Source: Podarcis erhardii (taxonomy: Eukaryota). From it: a stretch of 64,000 nucleotides of DNA. This document shows, one piece after another, positions 8,228 to 38,071 of the stretch. The notes beneath the pieces are model-generated. The model was not told where the DNA came from, made no database searches, and saw only the letters and a list, made by a program, of their open reading frames with translations. The stretch lies in NCBI GenBank assembly GCA_964252035.1, contig CAXUOO010000263.1; one strand, given 5' to 3'. Positions within the stretch are counted from its first letter, which is position 1. Each line of letters begins with the position of its first letter. The translations under genes and the position numbers were made by a program.

Positions 8228-10696
8228 TTATTTCTGCTGTTCTGTTGCAGCGTGTTGTTGCTTTGTAGACCACTCCTCCCCTGCACTAGTAGTCGAGGGC
8301 GTTTCGTCATTTGTGCGCACGTATTTGTCGTTTGCTGCTACACGCATGCAATCCTTTTCTTGTGGCTGTTCTTGATTTGGGGGCGATGGCGCTGCTGCTT
8401 TCCGCAGCAAGTTCGATGCTGCATGCACACCTATTTGTTCAGCAACAGCGAGCATAGCAGGATCTGCACTAGCACTAGATTTTGATGAAGTTGCTAATTC
8501 ACTGTGTGTATTCCTAGGGGCTTCCCCCTTGCCAACAGAGAGTGCAGCGACAGTGCGAGTAGTAGTAGTAGCGTAAGGCGACAATTGTTCTTTTTCGTTT
8601 TCTGTCTCTCTTTCTGGTGCTGAGCTTTCATTTACAGCTGCTGCTGGTGATGAGACAACCGCAAGCGTGAGCAGCCTCCTTGGTTCATTCTGCTGCAACA
8701 ATGTCTGACCAGAAACCTCCTTCGTCAACTCGAGACTGACTCGATTTGTGTCCACACTGAAATTTCTATCGCAAACACAACTTCTTTTGGGGGTGGGTGG
8801 TGCTTGTCTGCTTTTGCCGCTATCCTCAGGAAAGAAAAGATCTTTCTGTACAACAACAACAGCAGGAGGACTTGCAGCGGCTGTTTTTTCCATAGATTGC
8901 CAGCACTGAGCAGGCTGCACTGGACTCGCTGTTTTCGTCACATGAAAATCCCGTTTTTGTTCCGAAGCTTGACGTGAATCGTCAAAGCCCGGAGTCTCTG
9001 CAGCCGCAATACTACCACTAGCAACAGCTTCGTCCAAGGCATTACTGGTGTCGTTGTACGACACGTGGTTGAGGATTTCTTCACTTTCACGGGGTGTACG
9101 TACACCTGAACCAGCCGCATCGACGACGTTCCACCAGTCCTCTGTGCTGCTGCAGCACTTTTCGCGACAGACTTTTTCTTCTGCTGCGCTTCCGTGGTCG
9201 TCTCTTAGACAGCAGCAAACCTCATCCACTGCGGACCACTCACTTTCTCGCTTACAAAGCTCCATTTCCGCTTCAATTTCTTTAGGTTGCTGTTGCGTTT
9301 GCCTCTTCTTCACTTCTTGCTGCTGCTGTTGCTTGTCAAACAAAGCATAGAAGGGATTGACGTCAAACAGAGGCGTACAAGGCATGCTCAGAGACTGCTC
9401 AGTCTCTCCTTTTTTCTCACTTACTTTCGTCGTTTTCCTAGTAGTCGGTAAGAAGTCTGCAGTCGCAGCAGCAGTTAAGAATGAGTTGGAGGTGCTCGGA
9501 ATAGTCGTAGCAGTAGTAGTAGTCGATAGTGAAGGAGGCGCAACAGAAGCAGTGTTGGAGACTGAAGCTGGTGCAGCTGAAGCAGCCGCATGCATGGAAG
9601 AAACGACTTTTTTTTGAGGAGAAGCAGCAGTAGCAACAAAAAATGGGCAGCTCACAGCTGTTTCGCGATCAGTAGCTTGTGTCTTGAGTTCAGGAATAGA
9701 CACAGAAGTAGACGATTTAGCATCTTGCGTGAGATCAGAAGAAGCAGCAGCAGAGTTTCCGTGTGAAGCAGAACCAACCAGAGCAACAGGTGGCTTTGCA
9801 TGAATGGCGGTCTTATCCGCAGCAGCAGCAGCAGTTGTAGAGTGGGCAGCAAGAAGCAGTGGAGGCGGAAATAAAGCACTAGTTGTACTTTTTTTGACTT
9901 CTTCTGTGGCTCGATCAGAGACTACACAACTCGAGAAAGAGGGACCTGCTGTGGTGAGTGAGCTGCTGCCAACAGGAGAAGCAGCAACAACAGCATGGAA
10001 AGTCGAGTCAGCCAGAGAAGAAGCCAACTGCTGCCTGCACTTCTCCTTTTTATCAGTTGTTTCAACTAGTCCTCCTGTTGAGCCCACTGCAGTGGGTTCC
10101 GGTCTTGCAGAGTGTTTCGAGTTTCCTGCTGCGTCAGCGAGTTTTTCTGAGTCGTTTTTCAAAAGCAGAGGTCGTGTTTGCTGCACTGCAGGAAACTGAA
10201 GTCCGTCTCTCGACTCAGTAGAGCAGGAGTTTTGACTGCTTGGGTCGCAACAAACATCATCGAAAACCTCAAAAGTATTGGGTGCAGAAGCGTAGTTCGC
10301 AAGCGACACGTAAACTTTGTCTTTTTCGCGTTCTTCACGGTGAAGCAGATACTGCTGCAAGATCGCGGCTCCTTCTCGAGGAGGCGGAGTCACTGAAGCC
10401 TCCAAGTCTGCGGGTTTTGTTCTTTTGGTGGCAGTTTCTGGTGGGAAAAGGCCTGATTCCACCACGGCTTCTTCTTGCTGCAATCGCGACGACTCATTCG
10501 AGGTCGAATCAAAAGCTACACAGCAGTGCTGCTTTTTTCGTTCAACTCTTGCGTCTTCGCTCCGTTGTGAAGAACAGTCACCCAGCAACACTGGCGCATT
10601 GAAAAACAACTCAGTTTTCGATTCTGATGCTGCTGTTGCTACGTCCTCTTCTTCGTGTTGCCGCTTCTTCCGTCGAGCAGCCAGTCGCTCAGTCAT
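8228..10696 (-). CDS. Hypothetical low-complexity protein (~820 aa, single large ORF; further 3' exons possible)
   Basis: An 881-codon open frame; first ATG at 10696 gives MTERLAARRKKRQHEEEDV (basic, NLS-like N-terminus). A/S/T/E/Q-rich composition like the other genes here. No domain recognised. Confidence 0.65.
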   Translation of the reverse strand: MTERLAARRKKRQHEEEDVATAASESKTELFFNAPVLLGDCSSQRSEDARVERKKQHCCVAFDSTSNESSRLQQEEAVVESGLFPPETATKRTKPADLEASVTPPPREGAAILQQYLLHREEREKDKVYVSLANYASAPNTFEVFDDVCCDPSSQNSCSTESRDGLQFPAVQQTRPLLLKNDSEKLADAAGNSKHSARPEPTAVGSTGGLVETTDKKEKCRQQLASSLADSTFHAVVAASPVGSSSLTTAGPSFSSCVVSDRATEEVKKSTTSALFPPPLLLAAHSTTAAAAADKTAIHAKPPVALVGSASHGNSAAASSDLTQDAKSSTSVSIPELKTQATDRETAVSCPFFVATAASPQKKVVSSMHAAASAAPASVSNTASVAPPSLSTTTTATTIPSTSNSFLTAAATADFLPTTRKTTKVSEKKGETEQSLSMPCTPLFDVNPFYALFDKQQQQQEVKKRQTQQQPKEIEAEMELCKRESEWSAVDEVCCCLRDDHGSAAEEKVCREKCCSSTEDWWNVVDAAGSGVRTPRESEEILNHVSYNDTSNALDEAVASGSIAAAETPGFDDSRQASEQKRDFHVTKTASPVQPAQCWQSMEKTAAASPPAVVVVQKDLFFPEDSGKSRQAPPTPKRSCVCDRNFSVDTNRVSLELTKEVSGQTLLQQNEPRRLLTLAVVSSPAAAVNESSAPERETENEKEQLSPYATTTTRTVAALSVGKGEAPRNTHSELATSSKSSASADPAMLAVAEQIGVHAASNLLRKAAAPSPPNQEQPQEKDCMRVAANDKYVRTNDETPSTTSAGEEWSTKQQHAATEQQK

Positions 10697-11722
10697 TCCA
10701 CGATATTCTCGCAGCAGGCGTCTAAACAGACACAAAAAGAGCTGCACACATGCAACCGTGACAAGCTTGGTGCACAGGATATTATACCTCAGTTTACCAC
10801 GTTCACCAGAAATCTGTGGGTCTAAACATGTACAGGTAAAAAAGACATATTCATATATGTATGTGTTTGGCATTTCAGCGAGGAGTCTGCACGTAGTACG
10901 TACACTTTTATCGGCGTGTGTTGTTCGTAGAGAGACACAGGGGCACTCGAGTGTATTGCAGAAGCATACAGAAGTCCGTCAGTGGCTAGTGTATGACACT
11001 GTGGAACATCTACATAGGAAGTGTACAGCTACTTTTTATATTTGGCAGATGCCTGCTTACGTGCAGAGTCGTTCGCTGGTTCTGCATCAGATGTGACACA
11101 TCAATCACGTGAAAAGCAAAAAGTCCTGAAATTCGCGAATACAAACATTTTGTACCGTACAGGTTATAGCCCCAGAAAAACGCACCAGATACGCACAGGG
11201 CTACGTGCATACAAGGAGGAACTCTGGAAACAGTACAGGAGTTGATCACAATCTTCTAGAATGCATATTCATGTGAATATGCATAGCTTTTGGTAGAATT
11301 CTGCACTTTTTAATCCTCAGCAAAGATTTCACGATCAAAGCATACAGCGGATAAGGCGCTTCTGCACTGCATGCACTTTCAAAGTCAGTCTACCCTTGCT
11401 AAGATCTAAACCTTCAACTCACGCCCGCCTACAACATACATACACAGGCTAGCGTCTTTCTGTGTGTTGCTTGTGGCCCTGCAGCAAAAAAACGGGTGTG
11501 CTTCACCTACGTGTTCGTCCACTTAATTTACATAACAAATTTGTATTGTTTATGCATACCACGAAAGAATAATCGAGATATTTATTGCTGTCCAGATATA
11601 TACGTAGACACAATGCAGGTGTGGATTTCGATTGTGCATAAGGAGACGAGTTTCGCCTGTGGAGTTTCATATGTCTTTGCATGCGCTGCGTCAACAGAAG
11701 AGTCTCCTACACACACGTGTGT

Positions 11723-15909: not shown

Positions 15910-18445
15910 TACGTGTAATGGACGTATTCGATTGGTGCCGATAGTATATCGCTTATATTACTTGATATATATTATTATGCTTACTATAATACAATCCACG
16001 TTATATCTATTTATCTGTTGCGTGCCTGTGCTGCGACTAATTCGAGTCAATTACTGCCTGCAGTACACATTACGAGTCGCTGCATTACGTAGTATAGCCC
16101 ACACGAAATCTATGTACTCGCTTCGTACGAGTTGCAACTAGTTCACGTCGACTTTCACCTGATAACCATTTCAAGCCGCTTACCACTTTTGAAAGAGCGC
16201 AGGATGGCAGTGAGACACCATACAGATCATAAAAGTTTCTCGGTAGTAAGCATGGTATATATGCAGACATATACATGTATGTTCTTACCAGCGACTTCGT
16301 TGCGTAAGTGCAGCCATGACGTAGCTCACCGTGAAGCATATATTTCTGTACGTTAGACATAACGAAATGAATAAATATGAGTATATCTCTACGTTCCCTT
16401 CATGATAGTCCTCTGACCTTAATTTTAACTAAAAAAAAATAGAAATAATTTTCGTATACAGACGCGTAGAGAGTGGACACACATCAAGCATGCTAATTTT
16501 GTTGAACTTTATGTGCTTTACATGCATACATATAGAGAGTGTGAGAGAGAGAAGAAAAAAATTTGGAAATTCTTTACGTGACTGACTCATACGTGCAGTG
16601 GTTTATAAAAATGGGATTCTGCATAAAGCTTGAGTTTTCTCAGAGAACGCGCCAGATCAGCGACTGTTTTTGCTATTCGAATGAATATGCGGTACAAGTC
16701 TCTCGGAATTTATTGATTCACTTGAATTTTTGATGCTTATCTACTAGGGCATTCGCGCCTCGGGTTTTTTCAACTCTCCGAGTGCCATTTCTCCACATCT
16801 GTGCAGCATGCGTTTCTAAAAGGAATTAACCTATAGCTCTCGAACTATCATAAAACTCTCCACTGTTTAGGTAGATTACTACCAGCAAGACATATAAATT
16901 CTGACGACGGAATGTGCATCCTTGATGATATAAACCTGTTTATCACATATAATTTTTTAGTCGAAGTAGATAACTAACAGCAAAGACATATGATGTCGTA
17001 GACGAGGGGTGTATGAATGGTGATATATGTTGGTATCGCGTTTTTCTTCTGCAATCTATTGAAGTCCTTTGAGCGTAGTATGTCTCATGGTGCAAGTGAC
17101 AATTTCTCTCTGATTTTTATGATCTCCTGCTTTCTCCGGTGTACCTTCCCTAGTTGTATCTCCTTTTATCCAGCTGGCTGAAGTGCTGCTTCTTCTTTTC
17201 TCACTCTTCGTCAAGTTCTACATCCAGGTCTAGGTTCAGGTACAAGTACAGATGTTTGACTATACATAAACTTGGTCTTTTTAGCGAAGCCGCTTTCTTA
17301 TCTTCTTATTACCTAATCCAGTACGTAGCTATGCATCGTTTTTGCTGTGGATTTGTAATGTAGCTGTTGTTATTCGAAAACGCAGAGATTCTACAATAGC
17401 TTTTGAGTTGCGAAAAATCTTAAATCTAGTTTCTTTCTTCACCCCTTGTGCCTTCCCCCTATTTTCTCGCTTCAGTCATTCCCTTGTTTCTTTTTGTGAC
17501 TCTGTAGATGCCCTCTCTCATTTTAGTGTGTGTAATGGCGATATGTTTAGGATCCGCTCCTTTCTTTGTCATTTTCCGCTTGTTGTAATTGACAACAGAA
17601 TTACTTGTACACGGTTGTAGTATTCCCATTAATATGTATGTTGTACATATACGTTTATATATGTCTACACAAAGCGATGTTGTCGAAAGTAGTTTGTCGA
17701 AGTTTTCTAATTACACTGACGTATTTCGAATACACGTTAAATATCTGAGTTTCCGTGCAGCTCATTTCTTCTAAGAGTTGGCTTTCTGTGCCCCGGGTTT
17801 CCCTGAACTATATGTGGAACTGACCCTCCGAAACGGATGCTATGTCCTTATATTCTTGCATAGTTTCAAGTCGCTAAATTTATTCTCCTTCAAAATTGTA
17901 CGCATAGATATCAGCTACCTAGGTCTCGATATATCTCGTATGTACGAATTTCCTCACTGGACTATCTGCACATACATATATATATTGTGTGGATGTATCT
18001 AAGCAGAAGACGAAGTATATTTAACAGGTTTTCGGTGAAGTGTATGCAGCTTTTTCTTTGAATTCAAGGGACGCTGCTCCATGGGATGTATGACTCCCTC
18101 AGCTCTAACCGTTTTCGACCTAATCTATGGTGAAAAGTCCAGCGTGCGACCCCCTCCGTCACAGAATACGAAACTGAGTATACATATACATTCACATTCA
18201 CAAACATATATATATAGATGTACGTATGTATGTACGTATGTATATATGTATACATGTATGTATTCATGTATGTAAGTGTTTGAATGTGTTTTTTGAGTGG
18301 TTGAGTGTGTGCGTTGAAGAGGGTCACTCAGCACGGTGAGTCCGCTGTGTGTCAAAAAGGTAGAATGTTGCTGTTGTTGTGAAGTGAGTGGGTTCTTCGT
18401 GCCCAAAGACAGAATGCAGTGGAGCGCGAAGAATTGTGGAAAAAA

Positions 18446-21400
18446 ATGCCAACGACAGAAAAGAAAACAACTGCTTTTTTCCCAAATGGTGGCGGTGAAG
18501 GGGGAAGGGAGTGGAGCGGAGGAGGAGGAGGAGCCACGAGACACGCGAAGGCGTGGGCAGTAGACGAGCACAAAAGTAGACACGGTTTTTCTGCTTCAGA
18601 GAGGGAAAAGGAGACACCGAAAAGTGGGCTTCTTTCTTCAGTGGAGTCGCCTCAGCAGCAGCAGCAGCATGCAAAGCAGCAACTGCTGCTGAAGAGCAGC
18701 GGGTGTGCAGCGGGTTTCACTCGCTTAACTGCTTCACTGCAAGCCACAGCAGTCGCTTCAAACCCACCACCATTACCACCACCACCATTACCACCACCAC
18801 CATTACCACAACCACCATTACCACCACCATCCGAAGAAGGTGGTTTTCGTTTGAGGGTGGAGGAGAAGGCGACCGCGACTCCACAGAGAGGGTCGTTTCA
18901 GCGACGACGCTGCAGACCTCGAACTGGCAGACTGCTGCCTCTGGGAAAACTGCATGCACTCGATCCCACCGTCGAGGGCTTGACTGAGGCCTTTCTCGCT
19001 GAGTGCTGCGACGCAAGCAGCAATGGCACTACCACTACCACTACCACTACCACTACCACCACTACCACTACTACCACTACCACTTCTACCACTACTACTA
19101 CTTCTACTACTTCTACTGCTCCAGCACCAGTGAGAACAAGAGCGAAATGCGAAGCAGAGGATGCGCATGCAGAGGAGCACTGCAGCGCTTTGCAGGGAAA
19201 GGCAGCGCCTCGAGTTGGAGACTTTTCGCAGCAGCAGCAAGAGCTGAGAGTGACGGCGAGTGTGGGCTCGCTTGTGGGGAAGTACTCAGGGTGGCGAGTT
19301 CGACTGCCTGTCGCTTTAGACGCAGTGTTGGACGAACAAGCGGAGACTGACGTGAAGTTCGAAGAGCGGATAGTGGCAGACGCGAAAAAAGGGGCTGTAA
19401 AAGAGTCTGAAGCAGACAAAGCAGAGAGAGACCCCGACGAACAAGTGCAGCTTATAGTGCAGCGCCTGTTGCAGCGCCTGCTGCAAACTAGACGCGAAGC
19501 GTACGAGTTCGTGCCTGCGAGGAAAACGCGCGTTTTCGAAGTCGTCGATCGATGCAGTTTGCGCTCTTCTTCCCCTTCTTCTTCTGCTGCGAATCGAGGA
19601 GCCCCTGAAGCTGCACTGAACAACAAACTCATGCAGCAACAACGAGCGGAAGAAGAGGAAGAACTCGGCCTGGGTGGGGCTCGCATTCTCCGTTATCGAC
19701 TTCTTTCTTCCTCCACTACTACTGCCACCACCACGAATACAACTACTACAAATACAAATACAAATACAAATACAAATACAAATGCGAATGCGAATACAAC
19801 TACTACAAATACAAATGCGAATACTACTCCTACTACTGCTACTGCTACTGCTAGTACTCTTTTTGTGAGCAGCAGTGAGGGTGAACAAGGAGAGAGGAAG
19901 ACGAGAGTTTGCAGGGAGGAGGAAGAAAAGAAGCAGGAGCAAAAAAAAGTGGTGGTGGAAGTGGTTGAGCGAGTGCCGTTGGGCAGTCGCACCATTTACA
20001 GGCCCAACAGCAACTTGCACATGCGCTTGACTGCTGAGTCTGAAATCACCACTCGATTCAGCCAGTTGGAGCCGCCCCCTCTTCCGTCGCAGCCACGGAG
20101 AGCGAAGCAAGCAGAAAAAGCAGAAGAAGAAAAAGCAGAAAAAGCAGAAGAAGAAAAAGCAGAAAAAGCAGAAGAAGAAGAGACAGAAAGTGCGCAGCAG
20201 CAGCAGGCAGCAGTGGTTCAGCGCTGGTGGGCTGTGCACGACTTGTGGGAGTTGCGTCTCAAACCGCAGCAGACGCAACGGCGAGGAGAAGAAGAACTCG
20301 AAAGCGAGCAGCATCGAGAGTTTGAGAGCCCGGTCTGGACTTTGGAGGTGAGTGAAGAGGGCGAGTTGGAAGACTGCAGCACTCCAGCTGCTCTTCTGTT
20401 GCTCCGTAGAAGCAGCAGCGAAGGCAGCACACGCAGAAAACCCAGAAAAAGAAACAGCCACTCAAAAAGTGCAAAAAACGCTGTGCTGGAAAAAAACGCT
20501 GTGGTGGTTGATGCTGTGGTGGAAAAAGACGCTGTGGTGGAAGATGCAGCAGGGCAGGAGAGTTTGCAACTCGCAGCTGATCTGGACCGCTATGGAGAAA
20601 CCAAGCAGGTGCTGATTCGCCTAGTGGGTTGTGGACGAGCTCTGCAGCAGCAAAGAGAAAAGATGCGAAACGGAAAACCGCACGTCTTCGGAGCTCTTGC
20701 GCAGCTGCTGCTCGAAAACGCTCGCGTGCTGGCTCGCTGGCTGGATGAGTGCTTTGAAGAAACTGCTTTAATAGCAACTTCTCCTGCTGCGTTTCCGCTC
20801 TATTTCCCCAACCACCTCGGCGACGTCGTCCACGCTGTGCAGCGTCACTACAATCAGCGCAAACTCATTCAAGCGGGAGCGTCTCGAGTCGCTGGATTAC
20901 GCATACATAACAACCAGGTATTTGTCTGTGTGTGTGTGTAGGAGGAGGAGAGCTGCAATGTTTGCAAGAACTGGTCGGTGTTTTTTGGCTGAAGGGTGTT
21001 TGGGTGTGTGGAGAATGCAGAAATTGTGTGCGCTTTCATCACGAGCGAGAGAGACGTCTTCTCTGTGTGTTCTCTTCCCCACACAACTCATGTTTATGTG
21101 ACTCAGAGATGAAGTGGGCAAGTTCTTTTTTTACTTAAAAGTCACGTACACACGAGGCAGTGGGTTTCGAGTGCGCAACTGAGCGTAGGGAGGTACCGAA
21201 AATTCCACACACAGCTTTCTCTAGTAACGTCTATGCAAAAAACATGCATATCCAGTCATGTCAAAAATTCAACAAAGAGAGAGAGAAAGAGCAGTACAGC
21301 GCCTCCGACAAACAGACGAGGCAACTTCTGCAGCTCAGTAGCTGTGCAGAAAGAAGCAAGATGCGCACGTGGTATGCTTTCAGTCACTGTATATTGTCCT

Positions 21401-24400
21401 TCTACATATCCACCTTTTCTGTCTCTTTGCTCGATAAAAGACACTGTGTGTCGTATGCGAATGGTGGTTGCTAAATTTGAGAGATTTGCCAGCGTCTGTT
21501 CGGTGGGTTGTGAGATATTTGCAAGCGTCTATTATTTGTCTACACACCTTTGTATTATATACTTGTGTCTCTACGTATGTATGTGTGAACTGCTTCTCTC
21601 TCCTGTGTCGGTGGTCGCTTTTTGTTGTTCGAGGAAGAACTAGATACACAATAAAACAGGGTTTTGACTTCTTTATTTGGCTTCTGCGGTGTGTTCTTGC
21701 ATGCTGCGTTTCATCGCATCCAGATGAGCTTCTTTGTGTCGCGTTGTACAGTGGAATGTGTCTCGGATTTGGATTTTGAACTTGTTTCGCTTTCGCAGGT
21801 GAAACGCCTGCTGCTGGAAAAGTTCGTGCATGCAGGCGACTCAGTGCTGGACCTAGCTTGTGGGCACGGCCAAGACATATGGAAGTACCTGAACTGCAGA
21901 ATTTCTCAATTCGTAGGCGTAGATATCTCGCACCACGAAATCAGAGAAGCTCGTCGCAGACTGCAGCAGCAGCGCTTTCACCCAAGAAATGGCGGGCACT
22001 CCGCTGCTGGAACAACAGACTCACTGCTGAAGCCCCCAGAATTTCACGTCGGAAACTTGCTGGAAGCGAAGTCGCTGAATTTTCTACGTGGCCAGCAGTT
22101 CGACGTGGTGTCTGTACAGCTGGCGCTGCACTACATGATGCAGTCGCAGGAGCAGGCGAAGCAACTGCTGAGTCGAGCAGCGGCTCACTTGAAAGAAGGC
22201 GGATTTCTGCTAGGCAGCACTGTTTGTTGCGAAGTTTTAGCGGATCGTTTTCTACTGCTGCAGCTGCTTTCTCCAGCTGCGACTTTGCGCAGACGGTCTG
22301 CGGCAACTACTGCTGCGAAATCGCTCGACGACGCAAAGTCGCTGCAACGAGCAGCTGCTGGAAGTGGCTGGTGTTTAGAGGTTGGAAACGATATTTATGC
22401 TATCACCATCAAAGTGCATGCGCTCGTGCAGTTGCTGCGTGACTGTCCAGATGCTGCGGTTGCTGCAGTGGCTAGCAGACTCGCTGCTACTACAGCTGCC
22501 GAAGAAGAAAACACGTCAGCACCGAATCTCCTTGTTGCTGACTCTGCAAGTGAGAGAGGAGAGGAGCTCGCAGTCTGCTTTTCTCGCTAGATGAGGGCTT
22601 TGTTTAGTCGCTGCAGCAGTGTGTGTTGTCTCCAATGTGTTGAAAAACATGCAGAAGCGTGCTCTCCACTGGAAGGGCACACTTTCTTGGTGTGCTTTGC
22701 GTACTCTCTCACACTTTGTGTGGACGAATTTTTTCTGGGTGTATGTGCAGAAATAAGCTTTCAAAGCAGTGCGCACTTGTGAACTGCTGGCTGTGTGCAG
22801 TGACGCGCGTCTTGCTTTTCCTTCCTCGCTACTCTATCTGCAGACAGAGAGAGAGAGTTCGGATGTTGTTTTTTCGTTTTTTCGGCTCTGTGTGTCTCTT
22901 TTGCTTTCTCCTTTAATGTATGTGCCGGGCTTTCTTCTCTTGGCGTATGTGTCTGCTGCTGCTGTGTGTTCTTCCTTGTGCAGCTGAGTTGTTGCGGCTC
23001 AGTTGTTGCTTCTTTTACCCTCCACTTCTTCTCTCTCTCTGCTACAACCGCCTCGCTTGACACTCTGTGCTGCTGTTGCTGGAAATCGATGTGTTCCTGT
23101 GCCAGAATTGTGCTTCTATTGCCTTTCTACTTAATTTCCCTTGTCGATAGTGCTGCTTTTTCCTAGTTTACATCTGTCCTTTCTTTGCTGCTGCCGCTTC
23201 TCGTAGTGCTATCGCTGTTCTGTATCATTGTGTTCCTTCTCTTTGGTTCACTGGGCTGCAGTTGGTGCTTTGCTTTCTTTGCTGTCTCTCATTGTCTGCT
23301 ATTGCAACTGCGACTTCAACTGTTGTAGCAGCTTTACTACGACTGCAATTAGGGCTGGTTGTCTGCTGATGGGGTTTCGGCTTTTTTTCCTCTTCTAATG
23401 ACTGCTTTCGCAGTTTCGACTGTGCTGTGAATATTTGGTATTTGTTGCTGGTTTTTGGCTGTTGTAGCTGCTTCCTTTCTTGGTGCCTGTTGTGGCTGCT
23501 CTTCAACTGTTGTGGTGGCTGTTTTAAGTGTTGCGAACTGCTTCAACTGTTGCCGCTGCTGCTTTACTTGGTGTGGCTGCTCTTCAACTGTTTTTGTGGC
23601 TGCTAACAATGTTGCAGCTATTTCAAAGGGGGCTGCTGTGGCTGCTTCGAATTTGCTGTATCTTCTTTGAGTGTTTGTTTCAGGCGGAATAAAAAGCGAG
23701 GGAGTGGCAGTTTTTCCTGATGGAAGCAATGTTTTCGAAAATTTGAGTATCAGCAGCCGAGCAGCAGCAGCAGCTCATTTGCGCATGCATTTGGAGAAAG
23801 ATTTTGGCATTGTCTACCACTTTTACTTAGCTGACTCGATCGACGCTGAAGAATTTGTTCTTCCCTGGAGAAGCATCTGTGCTGCTGCAGCGTCTCTGCA
23901 ACTAAAGCTGGTGCTTTCACTCTCGTTTCCTGAATTTCTATCTGCAACAGCAAAAGCAGGCAACACCCGCACCACTGCTGCCCTTCAGCAGTGGCTCTCC
24001 GCTCTCACACCAAGCCAGCAACTTGATAAACCTCAATTTGAAGTCTTCTCTCTCTACAAAGTGTTCGCTTTCCAGAAAGTCTCTTCTTTCTCGTCGAGTC
24101 CAACTTCTGCTACGATTGCTACAATTAACGAAACTCCTGCAACAACTAATGTTGCTAAACCATGCGCTACTGTAACAGCGAAAAATGCTACGAATTCAAG
24201 TGTTGCGCCTGTTGTTGCTACTGCTTCCACGGTTGCCATTGCTGCGGAATTCAGTGCTAAGCCTGTTGCTGCTGATGCTGTTGATGAGTGCAAGGGCGAA
24301 TTAAAGCCTGCTCTTTTAGTGCGGAAAAATTGTGAATCGAGCTGCAACGACAATAGCGGCAGCGATAGCAACACCAATATGGCTGCAGCGGCCGAAAATC

Positions 24401-24618
24401 TCTCTTTGTTTCCTTATAGTTACTTAGCCAAAGCGCAGTTTCGTAGCAGCAGTAGTCAAGCAGCTCTCGAAGCAGCTGCACTTGCACCAGTAGTCTCTCA
24501 AATGGTCAAAATAGACGTAGCCGATGGTGCTTCTGCAGGACCACCAGCAGCTACCAGTATATATGAGGGAATTTCTCTTGGCAAGAGAAAGAAGAGACGG
24601 GTTCTTTCGAAAGAATAA
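18446..24618 (+). CDS. RNMT: mRNA cap guanine-N7 methyltransferase (RNMT/Abd1 family) with an N-terminal Cet1-like pseudo-triphosphatase domain; model join(18446..20917,21799..22549,23684..24618)
   Basis: The spliced product reads VQRHYNQRKLIQAGASRVAGLRIHNNQ|VKRLLLEKFVHAGDSVLDLACGHGQDIWKY, then FVGVDIS..EIREARRR, FDVVSVQLALHY, LKEGGFLLGST, GNDIYAI, FGIVYHFYLADSIDAEEFVLPW and QFEVFSLYKVFAFQK, all RNMT/Abd1 motifs in order. Junctions are phase-consistent: 20917|gtattt..tcgcag|21799 (phase 0) and 22549|gtgaga..tttcag|23684 (phase 1). aaaaATG start at 18446; C-terminal KRKKRR NLS-like tail. Confidence 0.9.
19241..20750 (+). other. Triphosphate tunnel metalloenzyme (Cet1/Pct1-type RNA triphosphatase)-like domain with degenerate catalytic motifs
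   Basis: LRVTASVGSLVGKYSGWRVRLPVALDAVLDEQAETDVKFEERI aligns to the recalled Pct1 LEIEAKFGTLIDLETQNRFEFPVMNETILNPEFNLRTRFESDM. VERVPLGSRTIYRPNSNLHMRLTAESE aligns to KKRRVADLFLYCPNDAFDIRISISDE. GRALQQQREKMRNGKPHVFGALAQLLLENARVLARWL aligns to ADLRDRAQKAKDGMEAPLFRRVQLFMDNVRILRRE. Confidence 0.75.
20111..20180 (+). repeat. 24-nt coding tandem repeat (AEKAEEEK x~3)
   Basis: gcagaaaaagcagaagaagaaaaa starts at 20111, 20135 and 20159. Confidence 0.9.
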
Positions 24619-31563: not shown

Positions 31564-34500
31564 CTACGCGAAGTCTGAAAGAAAGTCAGGGTCAGAATGC
31601 AACTGCTGCTCATGCTCAGCCGCTGCTGCAGCGGTCAACAAAGAGAGCTGCTTTCGTGGAGACTCACTGAGACTTCTGTGTCTCACAGTATCGGCTAAGT
31701 TCCTATAAATTCCGTCTTCGAAAGCCACACAAGGTAAAGCTGCAGTGGCAGCATCGAGAGCAGCAGCAGCAGCAGCAGACCAGGCACTCGGTGCATAAGA
31801 AAGAGCAGCCTCAACAGTTGCAGTGGCTTTTTTCACTTCTTCTGCAGAAGGCCAAGCCTCTTCGTCAGCTGCTTCGACAGCTGCACGAAAACTCTTTTTT
31901 TCGGGTGATGGGTTACTCAGTGCTTCATCACTATCGCCAGTCGGCGATGCTGCTGCTGAGCCTCTCAGCCAAGCAACAGCAGCTGCTGCAGCAGCAGCTT
32001 CGTCTTCTTTGTGTTGTTGCAGCCATCGTGCAGCTTCCTCAATATTTTCAGCATCACTTTCACCCACAGTCGCAAGAATCGCAGCTGATGGTGGTGGCTG
32101 GCGTTGATTGACTGAAGAAGCAGAGCCCCCAGCTTCAGCTCTTTCGTGCGCAGTCGCCTCCACATTTGCGTGGAAAGTTTCTGTTTGAGGCTGCTGACAG
32201 GCAAGACTAGCAGCTTCGTAGTTTTTTTGCGACTTCTTTTTCTTGTCGACCACAGTAGGTGACGTCGTCGTCGACGACGCAGTTCGGAACTTACTCACGA
32301 TTTGGGGGTCTTTATCAGTTTTTCGAGCACACTGCGCAAAGTCCGTATCTGCAACAGTCGCACTAGCAACAGCACCACCACCACCATCGCCACCACCAGC
32401 AGCAGCCAAAGGAGACCTGCTTTTTCGTCTGCGCTTTCGACTTTGCGGACTGCGTTCAGTGAGTTCTTCCACGCCCAACAATTCTTCGCGAGAATAAGGC
32501 GATGGATATTGAGAACAATGACGCTGCTCTTGTGGCTCCTTCTCTCTACACAAAGAAACCGGCAGCAATTGCTGCTGAAGTCTCTCAACAACCACACCAC
32601 CACCACCACCACTACTACTACAATCACCACCACCACTACTACCACCACCACCACTACTACTACTAATGTCGGCACTGTTGTTATGTTGACTAGTTGGTGA
32701 CAAAAAAGCGTCAACAACCCAGTCTGCAGCAGCAGCAGCAGCACCTCCAGCAACTGCTCTGTCGCCCTCATCCACACTGCTGGTTTTACTGCTGCTTTCT
32801 TTGTTGAGCAAATCCATAGCAGCCAAGCCAGCAACAACAGCAGAGGCTGCTGCTGTTGTGGTTGGTCGCTTGCTTTTGCCCTTGCGACTCGAAGAACTCT
32901 CCTCTCGAAGCGGAGAAGTTTGTCCAGACAAAAAAGCAGAAGAAGAAGAAGCAGCAGCAGCAGTGTGAGCACGTGGCATCAATTTCGCAGCTTCAGCAAC
33001 GAGAGCCAAAGTTTCAGCGACTTCAGCGGCAGTTGGGGCAGTCGCGTTTTCACCAGTGGCGACGACAGAAGACTGAGGGAGAAAGAGGGGACGCCGCTCA
33101 GCTTTTCTAGCGTCAGTGACGTCCACGTCGATCATACAGAGCCCATCAGGAGTTGTAGCAGTCGTGTTGCTGCTACTTGCAGTAGTAGGAGTTGTGGTTA
33201 TCGTTGTTTTCGAGACAGTGCTTTTCGCGCTCGTCGTCGTCCGTGCAGCAGCAGCAGCAGCAGCAGACGAGTGACTTTTTTCAACAGCAACAGCAGCAGC
33301 AGGAGAAGCACTTGTTGCGGTTGGAGAGGGAAGCGAGAGAAGCAAGGGACTTGCATGCAGCAGCTGCTTGGAGACAGCACTGCCTCCTCTGCTGTTCTCA
33401 GTTTTGCCCCGCAGGACGTTGTTCTCTGCACTTTCGCAACTGCTCCTGCTGCTCGTGGGTGTACAGACACTGCGACTGCTCCGCGGGGTGCACGAACAGA
33501 CACTGTCTTCAGCGCCACTGTCTTCTTCTTCTTCTTTGCTTTCGTCGCCAGCAACAGCAGCAGCAGCGAAAAACCTTCTTCCACACAAAGGAGGCAGGCG
33601 CCCTCTGCCGCCACCCACTGCTTCCTCTCCACTTGTTTTGAACGCGCTTTCGTCTCTGCAGTAGTAGCTGGAAACAGCAGCCACTGCTCGCTCGTTCTTT
33701 TTTCTGCGAGAACTCGCTCGACTAGCGCGACTGCGATCGCTGCCGTCGCTCTTCTCACCGCCTCCTCTTCCTCCACCAAAATCAGGCGAAACCGACCTCA
33801 AACTTCTACCTCCACTTACACCTCCACTTACACTTACACCTCCACTTACACTTACACCACTTACATTTACACCAGCTGCTCGAGCAGTGAAAGAAGAAAA
33901 TCCTCCACCGCCTCCGTCATTGGTGCTGCGCGCTGCAGCAGTAGTGGGCGACACTGGCACACTACTACTACTGCTACTACTGCTACTGTTGGTGGTGGAG
34001 TTTCCACTAGTGGAGGCACTGCTGCTGCTGCTGGTGGGGGTGGTGCAGACTTTCTGTTTGAGGGCGCGTTTGCTAGCCATACTCACCGGCAAGTACTCCA
34101 CCACGAACCACTCAGGATTGACTGGAGTGTTGGAAACAGCGCACTTGTACAAAATGGCTGCTTCTCTCGCTTCTTCGAGCGAAGCAAAGTGGCCCAGAGA
34201 AAAGCCCTTGCTGCGCAGACGCCCTTCTTCTCTCCACTGACAGCGCCACAATCGACGCGCTGCATCGAAGTACACCCCTGTAGGCAGCAGCCCCAAAGGC
34301 ACCAGTTCATCTTCACCACCACCAATTCCACCACCATTTCCACCACCATTTCCACCTCCAGAAGAAGCAGAAGGGGACTGTGGTGGTGGTGGTGGTGGTT
34401 GACTGCGAAGCAGTTTTTGCTGCGGCTTCTGCGGCGTGGGCTCTTCGTGGTAAAACAACTGCAACTGCTGATCTTCACTCAGTGGTGGTGGTGACGGTGG

Positions 34501-37500
34501 TGGGGGTGGAGGGTGGTGGTGGTGAAGACTTGCTGACGAAGCTGGTGGTGGTGGTGAAGAAGGTGAAGAAGAAGAAGAAGATGAGGGTGGTAAGAAGAAC
34601 AAGAAAGGTCGTTGTTTTTGTTGTTGTTGTTGTTGTTGTTGACGGTGTGGAGACAAGTTGTGGTTGTCGTAGGCGCGTCGGCTGGTGGTGGGGGGCGACT
34701 GCTGCTCTAGAGGAAGAGGAGAGGAACTTGCGTTTTCTCGCCGACTGCTGCTGCTAGTCAAACTAGTTTCTTTCCCACTTTTCCTTGCGTAGTTGTTTGC
34801 GTTCCACTCGTCACTAGTGTCTTCTAGTCGACTGCGCAAGAAAAAAGACGCATCCACGTTGTTTCCATACAAATCCTGTTTCTCGCCTCGCTTTCCAGCC
34901 TCCTCCTCACTGCGACCACTACTACCACTACTACCACTACTGCTACTGCTTAACAAACCTTGTCGAAGCAGAGCTCGCCCTCTACTTTTGCTCGCACGAC
35001 TACTACTGCTTCTGCTGCTGGTGCTGAGCACCTCTTTTTCTTCGCCACAAAAGAAGGGGCTCTCTCTACTGAGCAGTGCGTCGACTTTTGCTTCTTTCTC
35101 AAACAAAGCAGCTGAAAGACTACCTGCACCACCACCTCCACCAGTACTACTATCATCACCACCAGTATTCGCACCAAAAGCAGTAGTAGCAGTAGCAGTA
35201 GTCTGACTGCCTTCAGCGTTTTCCCTCCTTTGCCAAGTCGAAGCAGAAGAAGAAGGAGAAGAAGAAGCAGCGAACTTTCGCAGCAGTAGGAGTTGATGTG
35301 GTGGTGGTGGTGGTGGTGGTGGTGGTTGTTGGTCGTAAGGAGGTCGACGCGAACTGAGTGCGAGGGAGTTGGTTTTTGCTGCTTTTTCTCCCAACAACCA
35401 GGAACCAGAATCCAGCGACTTCGCTTTCTCTTCTTCCACAGCTTCTGCAGACTGCGACTGCAGCGTCTGCAGCCACAACAAAGGCCCCCCCCCACTCGCT
35501 GCAGAAAAAAATGCAGCTGAATGATCTGCTTGAGCAGCTGAATTCAGCCCCAGCACTGTTTTTTGCGCTTGCGCTTGCTGTCGCAGTTGTTGTCTCGCAA
35601 GAAAGCGAGCCAACAAACCAGTGTTTTGCAGCAAAGAGCAGAAACTCGCTTCTTCTTCTTCGGGGGCTCTGGAAACTGCAGCACGCGTGGTTGCGTTTTT
35701 CTTCTGTTGCAGCGCTGTTTCGAGACATCTTCTCACAGCAAGGAGTTGCTGCAACTCCGCTGCACAAGCAGGAGCAGCAGCAGCACCACTAGCAGCAGCA
35801 GTTGTGTTCGAAGGAGTGGAAACAGCAACAGCAACAGCATTTTTTTCAGTGGAGCCCCTGGGTGAGAGCAGCAGCGGTGGATCCGCTTGTTGTTGCGCGT
35901 TCATTTTCTCGGCTGCGCTTTTCTTCTCTTCGACAGCTGCATTCACTAGCGTGTACAAACCGGCTGCCAGTTGCAGCAGTTTCTGCTCTTCCTCCTCTTC
36001 TTCTTCTTCCTCCTCTTCTTCTTCTGCTTCTCTCGCGTGCCTCTCTGTCTCTGCCTTCTTCTTCTTCTTCTGTGCAGCAGGCGTGAAAAGCCCCACCTCT
36101 TTTTCCCCGCTTTCTTGTTTCCGTTCTTCTTCTTCTTCTTCTGCTCGCTCCACTGGTGGCTGCATGCGCAGCAGTCGTTCCCTCACTTGCAGAGAGCCCG
36201 CTGCTGCCGAGCTTTGTGGCCTGCTGCAGGAAGCAGCGACTGCATGCACTGCTGAGTGAAGCAACTGAAAAGGCTGCTGCTCTACTGCTGCTGCTGTTGA
36301 GGTGGTGGAGGTTGTCGAAGATGATGGTGGTGGTGGTGGTTGTAGTCCAGCAGCAGCAGCAGCCGCTTGTTCTCGCACAAATCGATGCAGCAAACTCGAA
36401 GCACTTACCGCGTTTTTTTCCTCTTCTGCTGTGTGTGTGTGTGGCGTGGCTTTTGTAGGCGAGAAACTGGCCTCGATTTTGCGCGTCGTTTCTTCTTCTT
36501 TTCGTTTCAGGGGCTGCGTCAACTGCTGCTGCTGCAGCAGCTGCAACAGCAAGAGCGCTGCTGCTTCTTCTTCTGCTTCTTTTTCTGCTTTTTCTGCTTC
36601 TTCTGCTTCCTCTTTTTCCGTCGTGGTTGCTGCGCTTCTTCGGAGAGGAGGCTGCGAGTCGTCTGTTTTCACTCTCCAGCGCGTTTTTTGTTCCTCGAAA
36701 GAAAGGGGCTGCATCACTTGGCGTTGTCTTTGTTGCTGCGCAAAAAGAAAGGCCTCAGCCAGTGGCTGGCTTTCTTCGCTCTTCGCTCTTGCAAAAAACT
36801 GCGTGGTCTCTTCTCTTGCTCTCTGCAGTGGAGCTGCTGCTGCAGAGTTTTGCCTCGACTCCACCGCTGTCGGTGAAAAAGTCCGCACCCGCTGAAAACT
36901 CGCTGCAACATCACCACTACTCCTACAACTATTGCTGTTGTTGTTGCTTTCATTACCACTGTGGTGGTCGCCTCTTCTGCTAGTCCGTCTCTCACTTTCT
37001 TCCTCGCTCTCCTCACAATCACCATAAGAGTAATATCCACGACTATCACTACTACTATTACGAGTGCGATTACGATTGATACTACTTTTGGTTCCAGCGC
37101 CCTCTTCTTCTCCAGAGAAATCCACACCCACACACTCACCGTCGTTCAGTGCTTTCTCCACACTACTGTTATTAGTACTAGTAGTTCTTTGAGTGCGTGA
37201 TTTCTGCTCTTCGGTGTTTCGAGTTTCAGCTCCGAAACTGCGCTCAGACTTCTCCGCAAGTGGCTGCTGAGAGTCCGTCAGCGACTGTGTGGGTGAGTGC
37301 GTGAGTGGGAGCTGCTTTGCCTGCTGAAACTGCTGCATGCAAGGCGCTGCATGCAAAAGCAGCAGTCGCTGCTGCGCTGCTTGGGCAGTCGACAGACGGT
37401 CTAGCCAAAAAGAAGGCGCTGCATTGACTGTCCACAAGTGACTGAAAGGAGGAACTCCCGAAAGAGCAGCCGCAGTTTCAGAACCAACTGCAGCAGCACT

Positions 37501-37664
37501 TGCTTCGAAAACTGAGGACGCAGCAGGCGACAAATATCCAGTGCGGTACGCAGAGCTGGCCACTGTCGGAGAAAAAAAGCCGCTTCTTCGACTGCTGCTG
37601 TGGCTACTGCTACTTGTGCATGCGCTGCTTTCCTCTTGTGGAGCTGGGCTCGACGATAGCCCTC
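31564..37664 (-). CDS. ApiAP2 transcription factor (one AP2 domain, otherwise low complexity); 5' end uncertain (first in-frame ATG at 37338, acceptor-like ttttcag|37664)
   Basis: A 2049-codon open frame containing LPTGVYFDAARRLWRCQWREEGRLRSKGFSLGHFASLEEAREAAILYKC. From memory this resembles the Plasmodium AP2-L / Toxoplasma AP2XI-4-type domain; orthology not verified. Confidence 0.9.
34105..34290 (-). other. AP2 DNA-binding domain
   Basis: GVYFD..RRLWRCQW...G..RSKGFS..HF..LEEAR..AI.YK pattern (three beta strands plus a helix). Confidence 0.92.
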
Positions 37665-38071
37665 CTGAAAAGCAGAACCACCACCAGCACACAAAAAGGC
37701 GTCCACACACCACAAACCTTTGCAGAAGAAGAAAAAATGCTGCACAAAAAAGTCCTTGTCAATACACTGAAGTGGCGTTTTCTGCAGTTTATGCAAATGC
37801 ACACAGGCGTCATCCAGCACCACGCAGTGTACATGCACTTGTACGTCGAACACTGGTAAAGATTCACTTCTGTTCGAGAAAAGTTGAAGCGCCAAAACGA
37901 AACAAATCGTCCTCTGCATGTCGCCCGTTTCACTCCATAGACGCGTGTGAACGCAATACACGCGCGTCTCTCGCTTTCTCTCTGTCTGCGTATGAAGTTC
38001 GTACAGTCACAAATGACTGTATATGTGTATGTAAAAAAGCGTGCAAGAGTCTCTGCTCTCTCGCAAACCAA

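Follow-up and report, generated by a model that had tools for sequence, protein, structure and literature searches.

A coccidian cap guanine-N7 methyltransferase with a probable pseudo-triphosphatase domain in its N-terminal extension

What is the long N-terminal extension that coccidian cap guanine-N7 methyltransferases carry ahead of their catalytic domain? The question is raised by a gene on the plus strand of contig CAXUOO010000263.1, within the 64,000-nucleotide stretch of DNA analysed here (the window). It encodes a coccidian ortholog of TgCmt (TGME49_272720), the cap guanine-N7 methyltransferase of Toxoplasma. TgCmt has 1283 residues, of which residues 716–1283 alone methylate caps in vitro (PMC12215270). 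The 2025 Toxoplasma study describes the methyltransferase as "exceptionally large", with a "large N-terminal extension" to which no role was assigned; only the C-terminal part was assayed in vitro (PMC12215270). We conclude, with a probability of roughly 80%, that the window gene is a three-exon ortholog of TgCmt in which residues 161–768 form a non-catalytic barrel of the triphosphate tunnel metalloenzyme (TTM) type, a pseudo-TTM domain, joined to the methyltransferase via the linker PLYFPNH.

A TTM-type domain in front of a cap methyltransferase

On the plus strand, an open reading frame (ORF) of 840 codons extends from 18419 to 20941, with its first ATG at 18446. Exon 1 comprises 824 codons and terminates with ...RIHNNQ directly ahead of a GT (all exon and domain coordinates are listed in Table 1). 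Exon 2 starts after an AG at 21798 (ag/GTG AAA..., VKRLLLEKF...) and breaks off within a codon, after its first base, where again a GT follows; exon 3 continues to the stop codon. The predicted spliced product of the three exons has 1385 residues. In a BLASTP comparison with the Neospora caninum protein, it gave a single high-scoring segment pair covering residues 158–1250, and the Besnoitia protein behaved alike. One exon and one frame contain both the TTM-like motifs and the helix that opens the methyltransferase (GDVVHAVQRHYNQRK...RIHNNQ); approximately 25 residues lie between this helix and the last one of the TTM domain. An earlier note on this DNA had claimed that this arrangement holds regardless of splicing, which is borne out by the extent of the open frame. 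The same note ended the gene at 22549, and this has to be corrected: exon 2 stops there, and exon 3, which carries the rest of the methyltransferase and the tail, had been missed. Taken together, the shared exon and frame, the single segment pair with the Neospora protein and an intronless homolog (P0126, see below) show that the TTM-like domain and the methyltransferase are fused.

The methyltransferase half was readily recognised. Exon 2 matched the family profile PF03291 with 88.2 bits (E = 7e-25, profile positions 44–188) and exon 3 with 39.9 bits (E = 3.5e-10, profile positions 220–315). In orthologs, profile position 9 is the first to be matched, by the counterpart of GDVVHAVQRHYN of exon 1 (residue 537 of the Cyclospora protein P0005 and residue 308 of P0126); as judged from these orthologs, the tail of exon 1 corresponds approximately to profile positions 9–43. 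The family-profile match exceeds the curated threshold and covers the domain. Exon 2 encodes motif I for binding of S-adenosylmethionine (SAM), VLDLACGHGQD, and its core L..LACGH.QD is invariant among the homologs. Judged by its sequence, the product of the window gene is a cap guanine-N7 methyltransferase of the active type.

The extension preceding this domain is shared with related proteins. Residues 270–824, all encoded in exon 1, matched the cap methyltransferases of Neospora (1211 residues), Besnoitia (1165 residues) and Cystoisospora (959 residues) with E-values from 1e-72 to 1e-80 and with 35–37% identity over the full query region. The alignment of these orthologs consists of near-identical islands between variable low-complexity inserts. 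We built an extension-only profile from four proteins, including those of Besnoitia and Cystoisospora, and searched 1.84 billion representative proteins with it. Five proteins were returned: the Besnoitia and Cystoisospora proteins, both members of the profile; P0005, the Cyclospora cayetanensis protein XP_026193509.1; P0004, a related protein from ENA; and P0006, a protein of 374 residues. The last lies outside the coccidian group and was found by this coccidian-only profile with E = 1.3e-5 among 1.84e9 proteins. It is a bona fide enzyme of the Cet1 family with all catalytic motifs (PF02940 E = 2.6e-45, Schizosaccharomyces pombe Pct1 E = 1.6e-32, Cet1 E = 8e-14). The cap methyltransferases of Neospora, Besnoitia, Cystoisospora and Cyclospora thus all have this domain. 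In Plasmodium and Cryptosporidium the extension-profile search gave no match, which at a divergence this high is no proof of absence; a survey of the P. falciparum phosphatome classed only Prt1 as CYTH-like (PMC4256932).

A further homolog, P0126 (671 residues), was found via its methyltransferase domain. Its gene is a single ORF without introns on a compact, AT-rich Logan contig of SRR18693150 (L001:221-2236), from an AT-rich and gene-dense eukaryote; 150 bp downstream of it lies an MCM gene. P0126 has none of the large inserts and consists of a TTM-like N-terminal half and a complete PF03291 domain (E = 3.7e-49) connected by the same Y-x-P linker. The N-terminal half scored 28.7 bits against the fungal profile and E = 6e-11 against the coccidian profile, and its motif A equivalent, HEIVARFG, has kept the first glutamate. 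P0126 is a good candidate, and a practical target, for structure determination.

Sequence evidence for the TTM assignment was obtained from a 30-sequence set of fungal Cet1 proteins and a six-sequence set of coccidian extensions. Alignment of the two sets by hhalign gave a probability of 92.2% (E = 5.8e-7) and, at a relaxed threshold, was colinear across template positions 30–299 of 307. A hidden Markov model (HMM) built from the fungal sequences only scored 35.5 bits on the window extension (E = 2.6e-12, seven targets), as against 6.4 bits for the best of 2100 shuffled sequences, and it matched all six homologs too, with 11–29 bits. PF02940 itself gave sub-threshold but colinear matches of 12.9–17.8 bits to the Cystoisospora protein (0.016), P0004 (0.089) and P0126 (0.0029). 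In an alignment-free search with language-model features of the window sequence, clusters of PF02940 ranked at the top (0.88, 0.87 and 0.87), and VTC and CYTH, two families of the TTM superfamily, came next; for residues 1–306 of P0126, PF02940 was again the top family (0.90). With default settings, exon 1 gave nothing but mucin and low-complexity matches in Pfam and in a phmmer search of PDB, and phmmer with residues 1–306 of P0126 gave no match in PDB.

The predicted fold agrees with the profile results. An AlphaFold2 model computed from a 36-row alignment (six coccidian and thirty fungal sequences) had a predicted TM-score (pTM) of 0.62, and its local confidence (predicted local distance difference test, pLDDT) was >90 in the conserved blocks and <50 in the inserts. 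The model contains eight long strands, as in the tunnel barrel with its flanking helices. The ten best Foldseek matches were Pct1 or Cet1 throughout (E = 2.7e-6 to 1e-2, target TM-score 0.53–0.63), and the next match had E > 1. In a VIA-align comparison with 48,161 chains, Cet1 reached a Z-score of 19.9 (245 residues, root-mean-square deviation 4.2) and Pct1 19.5; RESC2 (15.4), RESC1 (13.2), Cet1 of Trypanosoma cruzi (11.8), the triphosphatase of mimivirus (10.8) and YgiF (9.2) ranked lower, along with other CYTH proteins. Vaccinia D1 (Z 6.7) and chains of the Mediator complex (Z 5.9–7.8) were also retrieved. The earlier note had proposed that a catalytically dead TTM domain of the Cet1 type precedes the cap methyltransferase, with no guanylyltransferase in between, and had suggested a comparison with Cet1 and Pct1 by fold and HMM. 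The degenerate TTM domain is supported by evidence that is for the most part independent: profile searches in both directions, hhalign, the sub-threshold PF02940 matches, the fold comparisons and the language-model features. Residues 161–768 are a real, if very diverged, TTM domain of the Cet1/Pct1 type, in rigid linkage with the methyltransferase.

Active-site residues and the position of motif C

In Cet1, the metal is coordinated by E305, E307 and E496, any single mutation of which inactivates the enzyme, and the gamma-phosphate is held by R393, K409, K456 and R458 (PMC10201420; PMC2699512). Cet1 numbering was transferred to the coccidian proteins via P0006 and the joint coccidian/fungal alignment. 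The motif A residues E305, E307 and K309 correspond to R268, T270 and S272 of the window protein; the other five coccidian proteins have V or L, then S, Y or V, and then S, C, N or A at these positions. D425 is replaced by H525 in the window protein and by histidine in all five others, and K456, which reads V591 in the window protein, is lost throughout. Three residues are kept in all six proteins, namely D377 (also an aspartate in the window protein), E433 (E533) and R458 (R593). The equivalents of R393, K409 and K427 in the window protein are R416, R509 and R527; they are arginines in the Sarcocystidae and are lost in Cyclospora and P0004. The window protein therefore retains three of the four residues of the phosphate-binding basic set R393/K409/K456/R458 (R416, R509 and R593). 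In addition, the tunnel arginines R416, R418, R509, R527 and R593 as well as H525 and E533 are invariant in the window protein and the Sarcocystidae.

Since E305 and E307 are replaced in six of six coccidian proteins, the domain has lost two or all of its three metal ligands. The loss of the ligands in motif A, of the lysine in motif B and, in all probability, of the glutamates in motif C leads us to classify the domain as a pseudo-triphosphatase. It is probably catalytically dead, the loss of activity being predicted from the missing metal ligands; the same argument for inactivity has been applied to RESC1 and RESC2. With respect to the individual motifs, the earlier note had read motif A as RVTAS at about position 19247 and the motif B lysine as apparently lost. 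Both readings hold: RVTAS occupies 19247–19261, within the strand ELRVTASVG that aligns with NIEVEAKVG, and the lysine is the K456 equivalent discussed above. For motif C it had proposed VLIRL at about 20609 (20609–20623); this location is probably right, while the register was one residue off and a second placement, EEGELED, competes with it.

Several results weigh against our interpretation and are collected here. The high Z-scores of the fold match are partly circular, because fungal Cet1 sequences were present in the alignment used for modelling. A Cet1-free model from four coccidian sequences had a pLDDT of 39 and Z-scores of at most 5.7; Pct1 was among the top five Foldseek matches (E of about 0.3), and TTM-fold proteins made up eight of the nine top VIA-align matches (Z 4.8–5.7). 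We regard this Cet1-free match as weak by score, and as consistent with a TTM fold as far as the model goes. None of these proteins reached the PF02940 gathering threshold of 24 bits, under default filtering the window protein had no reported PF02940 match, and extension profiles of four and seven sequences retrieved neither Cet1 nor Pct1 directly from the PDB sequences. The Cyclospora protein and P0004 are without three of the retained basic tunnel residues, and any role in phosphate binding would therefore not be shared by the whole family. The tunnel of P0126 is seemingly still more degenerate, in a region where the alignment is uncertain. Finally, MAFFT and full-length hhalign aligned the fungal motif HELEIEF with EEGELED (residues 637–643), a placement by which E492, E494 and E496 are retained, with the glutamates kept in the window protein, Besnoitia and Cystoisospora.

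On balance, motif C is likely, with some reserve, to be TKQVLIRL (residues 719–726), in which the three glutamates have become Q, L and R. Both AlphaFold models contain exactly eight long strands, and residues 588–605 form one of them (approximately 12 residues in P0126). EEGELED is disfavoured because this strand is too short to accommodate both beta9 and beta10, notably in P0126. A helix, RALQQQREKM, follows directly after TKQVLIRL, and HMMER as well as hhalign pair it with the fungal helix that follows beta11. VWTLEVSEE pairs well with the fungal beta10 strand IVKIDLTQV, and the summed substitution score over beta10 and beta11 was +5.5 for TKQVLIRL and -1.8 for EEGELED. The EEGELED placement also leaves a conserved strand ahead of the last two helices without a counterpart.

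Proposed role and rival explanations

The domain probably no longer hydrolyses triphosphates and would serve a non-catalytic role. We prefer a docking or reader module that would keep the methyltransferase at the 5' ends of nascent transcripts. This proposal draws on the invariant tunnel arginines, which recall RESC2, and on the fungal barrels, which are surfaces for dimerisation and docking. In a first version, the still-basic tunnel (R416, R509, R527 and R593) might bind the phosphorylated 5' end of the RNA, by analogy with RESC2. Alternatively, the partner of the domain might be the active triphosphatase, a separate protein, or the RNA polymerase II/Spt5 machinery; the fungal Cet1/Pct1 barrels form such pairs. 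The earlier note had likewise considered a scaffold that might heterodimerise with the active triphosphatase, or an activator in the manner of RAM or vaccinia D12. A complex prediction for the TTM half and the methyltransferase half of P0126, run without controls or supplied alignments, gave an ipSAE of 0.00 and speaks neither way.

In its specific form, the proposal is a metal-free reader or adaptor peculiar to apicomplexan capping, whose tunnel would grip the ppp, pp or GpppN end for the methyltransferase or which would heterodimerise with TgCet, the separate, active TTM triphosphatase of Toxoplasma (PMC12215270). We put this forward tentatively and consider it rather doubtful at present. 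In the heterodimer version, the domain may be the inactivated paralog of an originally homodimeric enzyme, and the first and third steps of capping may be brought together in one parasite-specific complex. If either the reader or the heterodimer version is true, the parasite would depend on a domain that its host lacks and that would thus offer a drug interface.

Among the rival explanations, the one that survives best takes the TTM relic for an inert spacer or folding unit with no specific ligand or partner, the function residing entirely in the methyltransferase. It gains from the in vitro activity of TgCmt 716–1283 alone (PMC12215270) and from the tunnel residues, which erode progressively in proteins of the Cyclospora type and, it seems, in P0126. 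An inert spacer is nonetheless improbable: at an overall identity of about 39%, the window protein and the Sarcocystidae share, unchanged, blocks of the domain, the linker PLYFPNH and several charged residues of the tunnel, and the fusion has been maintained in at least three lineages.

Less likely still is a triphosphatase that is active and forms a bifunctional triphosphatase-methyltransferase by means of relocated or alternative acidic residues (for example EEGELED as an intact motif C, with E533 and D368). The retention of E492/E494/E496 under one alignment (in the window protein, Besnoitia and Cystoisospora) and the conserved equivalents of E433, D377, R393 and R458 would fit such an enzyme. 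Against this, ExExK, the hallmark of all TTM enzymes, is replaced in all six coccidian proteins; a single mutation of E305 or E307 inactivates Cet1 (PMC10201420); K456, D425 and D471 are lost as well; and topology and the C-terminal alignments favour the glutamate-free TKQVLIRL as motif C. Moreover, a separate active TTM triphosphatase exists in TgCet (PMC12215270).

That the extension is unrelated to TTM enzymes, its similarity being compositional and its fold match a product of the Cet1 sequences in the alignment, would suit the mucin-like low-complexity matches of the default Pfam/PDB sequence searches and the low confidence of the Cet1-free model, and is the most improbable of the three, as the matching blocks are not of low complexity and are colinear across the whole domain, the score of 35.5 bits stands far from the shuffles (at most 6.4), searches were significant in both directions, the compact, insert-free P0126 bridges the coccidian and fungal families, and TTM proteins ranked first with the Cet1-free model as well as in the language-model search, which uses no alignment.

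A pseudo-TTM domain in this position is of interest for several reasons. Its TTM identity accounts for the extra 600–700 residues of the enzyme and makes the "regulatory extension" experimentally tractable. Toxoplasma cannot do without cap formation, and efforts are under way to exploit the TTM triphosphatase as a parasite-specific drug target. A pseudo-TTM-methyltransferase would be an architecture outside the known capping-enzyme fusions and, after RESC1/2, a second case in which a Cet1-type tunnel is reused without catalysis.

The locus and comparison with known systems

The features of the gene are compiled in Table 1.

Table 1. Positions of the exons, domains and structural elements of the methyltransferase gene in the window.
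Feature	Position	Strand	Basis
Exon 1: disordered N-terminus, pseudo-TTM domain, linker, first methyltransferase helix	18446..20917	+	open frame; GT at 20918; M1, F11 and W23 invariant at ortholog start
Low-complexity N-terminal region, residues 1–160, Pro/Gln/Gly-rich	18446..18925	+	poor conservation; modelled part (residues 150–170) pLDDT <50
Putative pseudo-TTM (Cet1/Pct1-like) domain, residues 161–768, with low-complexity loop inserts	18926..20749	+	profiles, hhalign, AlphaFold, Foldseek, VIA-align, language-model features
Helix alpha1 (TVEGLTEAFLAECCDAS), equivalent of the Cet1/Pct1 N-terminal helix	18968..19018	+	hhalign; pLDDT 76–95
Insert 1 (alpha1-beta1): poly-threonine run, then Ala/Glu-rich stretch	19019..19216	+	pLDDT <50; missing from other orthologs
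Strand beta1, motif A equivalent, ELRVTASVG; E305/E307/K309 to R268/T270/S272	19241..19267	+	high-confidence alignment to NIEVEAKVG
Strand beta6, ARILRYRLL; R393 equivalent R416 kept	19679..19705	+	alignment, residue comparison
Insert beta6-beta7: Thr/Asn-Thr repeats and charged stretch	19706..19945	+	pLDDT <50; varies among orthologs
Strands beta7 and beta8 (VVEVVERVPLGSRTIYRPNSNLHMRLTAESEITTRF); K409 to R509, D425 to H525, K427 to R527, E433 kept as E533	19952..20059	+	hhalign, HMMER; pLDDT 86–93
Insert beta8-beta9, acidic, EEKAEK repeats	20075..20203	+	mostly low pLDDT; varies among orthologs
Strand beta9, motif B equivalent (AAVVQRWWAVHDLWELRL); K456 lost (V591), R458 kept as R593	20207..20260	+	single strand in both AlphaFold models
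Strand VWTLEVSEEGELED, most likely beta10, D471/T473 to E634/S636; alternative: EEGELED as motif C	20333..20374	+	alignments split; strand count favours beta10
Insert, VV(E/D)-rich stretch, in loop	20420–20590	+	differs among orthologs
Strand TKQVLIRLV, most likely beta11 (motif C position); E492/E494/E496 to Q721/L723/R725	20600..20626	+	hhalign of C-terminal half, HMMER, sum-of-pairs score
C-terminal TTM helix (VFGALAQLLLENARVLARWLDE), equivalent of the fungal F..I..FLNNIR.L.RNA helix	20684..20749	+	hhalign, HMMER; pLDDT 87–93
Conserved linker PLYFPNHL, TTM domain to methyltransferase	20795..20818	+	P, Y and P invariant in 7/7 proteins
N-terminal cap methyltransferase helix (GDVVHAVQRHYNQRK...RIHNNQ)	20819..20917	+	PF03291 start in orthologs at homologous residue
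Intron 1, GT...AG, 881 nt, phase 0	20918..21798	+	sequence; product colinear with orthologs
Exon 2: methyltransferase core with SAM-binding motif VLDLACGHGQD	21799..22549	+	PF03291 E = 7.1e-25
Intron 2, GT...AG, 1134 nt, phase 1	22550..23683	+	sequence; product colinear with orthologs
Exon 3: C-terminal methyltransferase half, low-complexity tail, stop	23684..24618	+	PF03291 E = 3.5e-10; ...GISLGKRKKRR agrees with ortholog ends

The four low-complexity inserts (19019–19216, 19706–19945, 20075–20203 and 20420–20590) are all located in loops between TTM elements. At the same loop positions, sequence and length vary from ortholog to ortholog. Within the beta6-beta7 insert lies the stretch RKTRVCREE (19880–19906, residues 479–487), of which the Neospora protein has a faint echo, RRATSETTG. 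HMMER had aligned the fungal beta6 strand (K.RVT.D) with RKTRVCRE in this insert; the assignment was dropped, as the stretch, unlike G.R(V/I)LRYRL, is unconserved in orthologs. We treat the likeness as coincidental, and it could be a remnant of the beta6-beta7 hairpin.

In two proteins from Logan assemblies, P0127 (1726 residues) and P0128 (1746 residues), approximately 1000 residues precede a cap methyltransferase domain located around residues 1010–1260. No TTM signal was obtained in these upstream residues with any profile used here; the two proteins represent a different long-extension form of the cap methyltransferase.

Elsewhere in the window, whose sequence contains no N and no stretch recognised as human, a plus-strand ORF of 409 codons (1371–2600) encodes Rpb2 domain 6 (PF00562, E = 1.7e-63) and is presumably one exon of the gene for the second-largest RNA polymerase subunit. 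A minus-strand ORF of 2049 codons (31564–37713) encodes a transcription factor of the ApiAP2 type with a single AP2 domain (PF00847, E = 1.4e-11). Three further minus-strand ORFs, at 38072–42514, 42789–49922 and 8228–10873 (1480, 2377 and 881 codons), had no Pfam match at E ≤ 0.001 and may be large lineage-specific proteins or exons. The ApiAP2 ORF, the Rpb2 exon and the best homologs identify the window DNA as coccidian.

Known capping-enzyme fusions combine triphosphatase and guanylyltransferase, guanylyltransferase and methyltransferase, or all three activities. In the literature on TTM, CYTH or pseudoenzyme domains together with cap methyltransferases, we found no description of the arrangement reported here. 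A direct fusion of a pseudo-triphosphatase with a methyltransferase would be new, and its fold may already be visible in InterPro or the AlphaFold database. Among the known systems, TgCmt is the enzyme to which the window protein is orthologous; the Neospora protein, a close relative of TgCmt, aligns with the window product over the range given above. The TTM identity of the extension is mentioned neither in the TgCmt study (PMC12215270) nor in any further paper that we found.

With Cet1 of S. cerevisiae (PDB 1D8H) and Pct1 of S. pombe (PDB 4PN0), the window domain shares the eight-strand tunnel barrel with flanking helices (Z of about 20), the colinear blocks alpha1, beta1 with R.SLPV..ET.L, beta7-beta8 (VEK.....IYSP....RIS.N.E) and the FLNNIR helix, as well as the equivalents of D377, R393, E433 and R458. 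It differs from them in that E-x-E-x-K of motif A, K456, D425 and D471 are missing and motif C is probably lost, and in its low-complexity inserts of approximately 40–80 residues in at least five loops. It is also fused in cis to a methyltransferase and not free-standing, and catalysis is presumably absent. Pct1 is reported to bind the carboxy-terminal domain of Spt5 (PMC4274631).

Vaccinia D1 and mimivirus R382 likewise have a TTM domain N-terminal to a cap N7-methyltransferase in a single polypeptide. In these viral enzymes, the TTM domain is active and a guanylyltransferase lies in between, whereas the window protein has only the short linker of about 25 residues. We rejected a hidden guanylyltransferase in view of this linker and the lack of any KxDG motif across the whole 1385-residue product; the earlier note had likewise seen no such motif. 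Non-enzymatic partners of cap methyltransferases are known in vaccinia D12 and human RAM; their folds are unrelated to the window domain, and they act in trans.

A functional parallel is offered by trypanosome RESC1-RESC2 (PDB 8FN4, 8FN6 and 8CDP), a pair of inactive Cet1-like tunnels in which two of the three metal glutamates are gone and the basic tunnel residues are kept; RESC2 binds the 5'-triphosphate of guide RNA (PMC10201420). The window domain resembles them as a TTM-like barrel without metal ligands in which basic residues are kept. The likeness is a functional analogy: there is no detectable sequence relationship, and RESC1 and RESC2 are free-standing paralogous subunits of a heterodimer in mitochondrial RNA editing, whereas the window domain is part of a cap methyltransferase.

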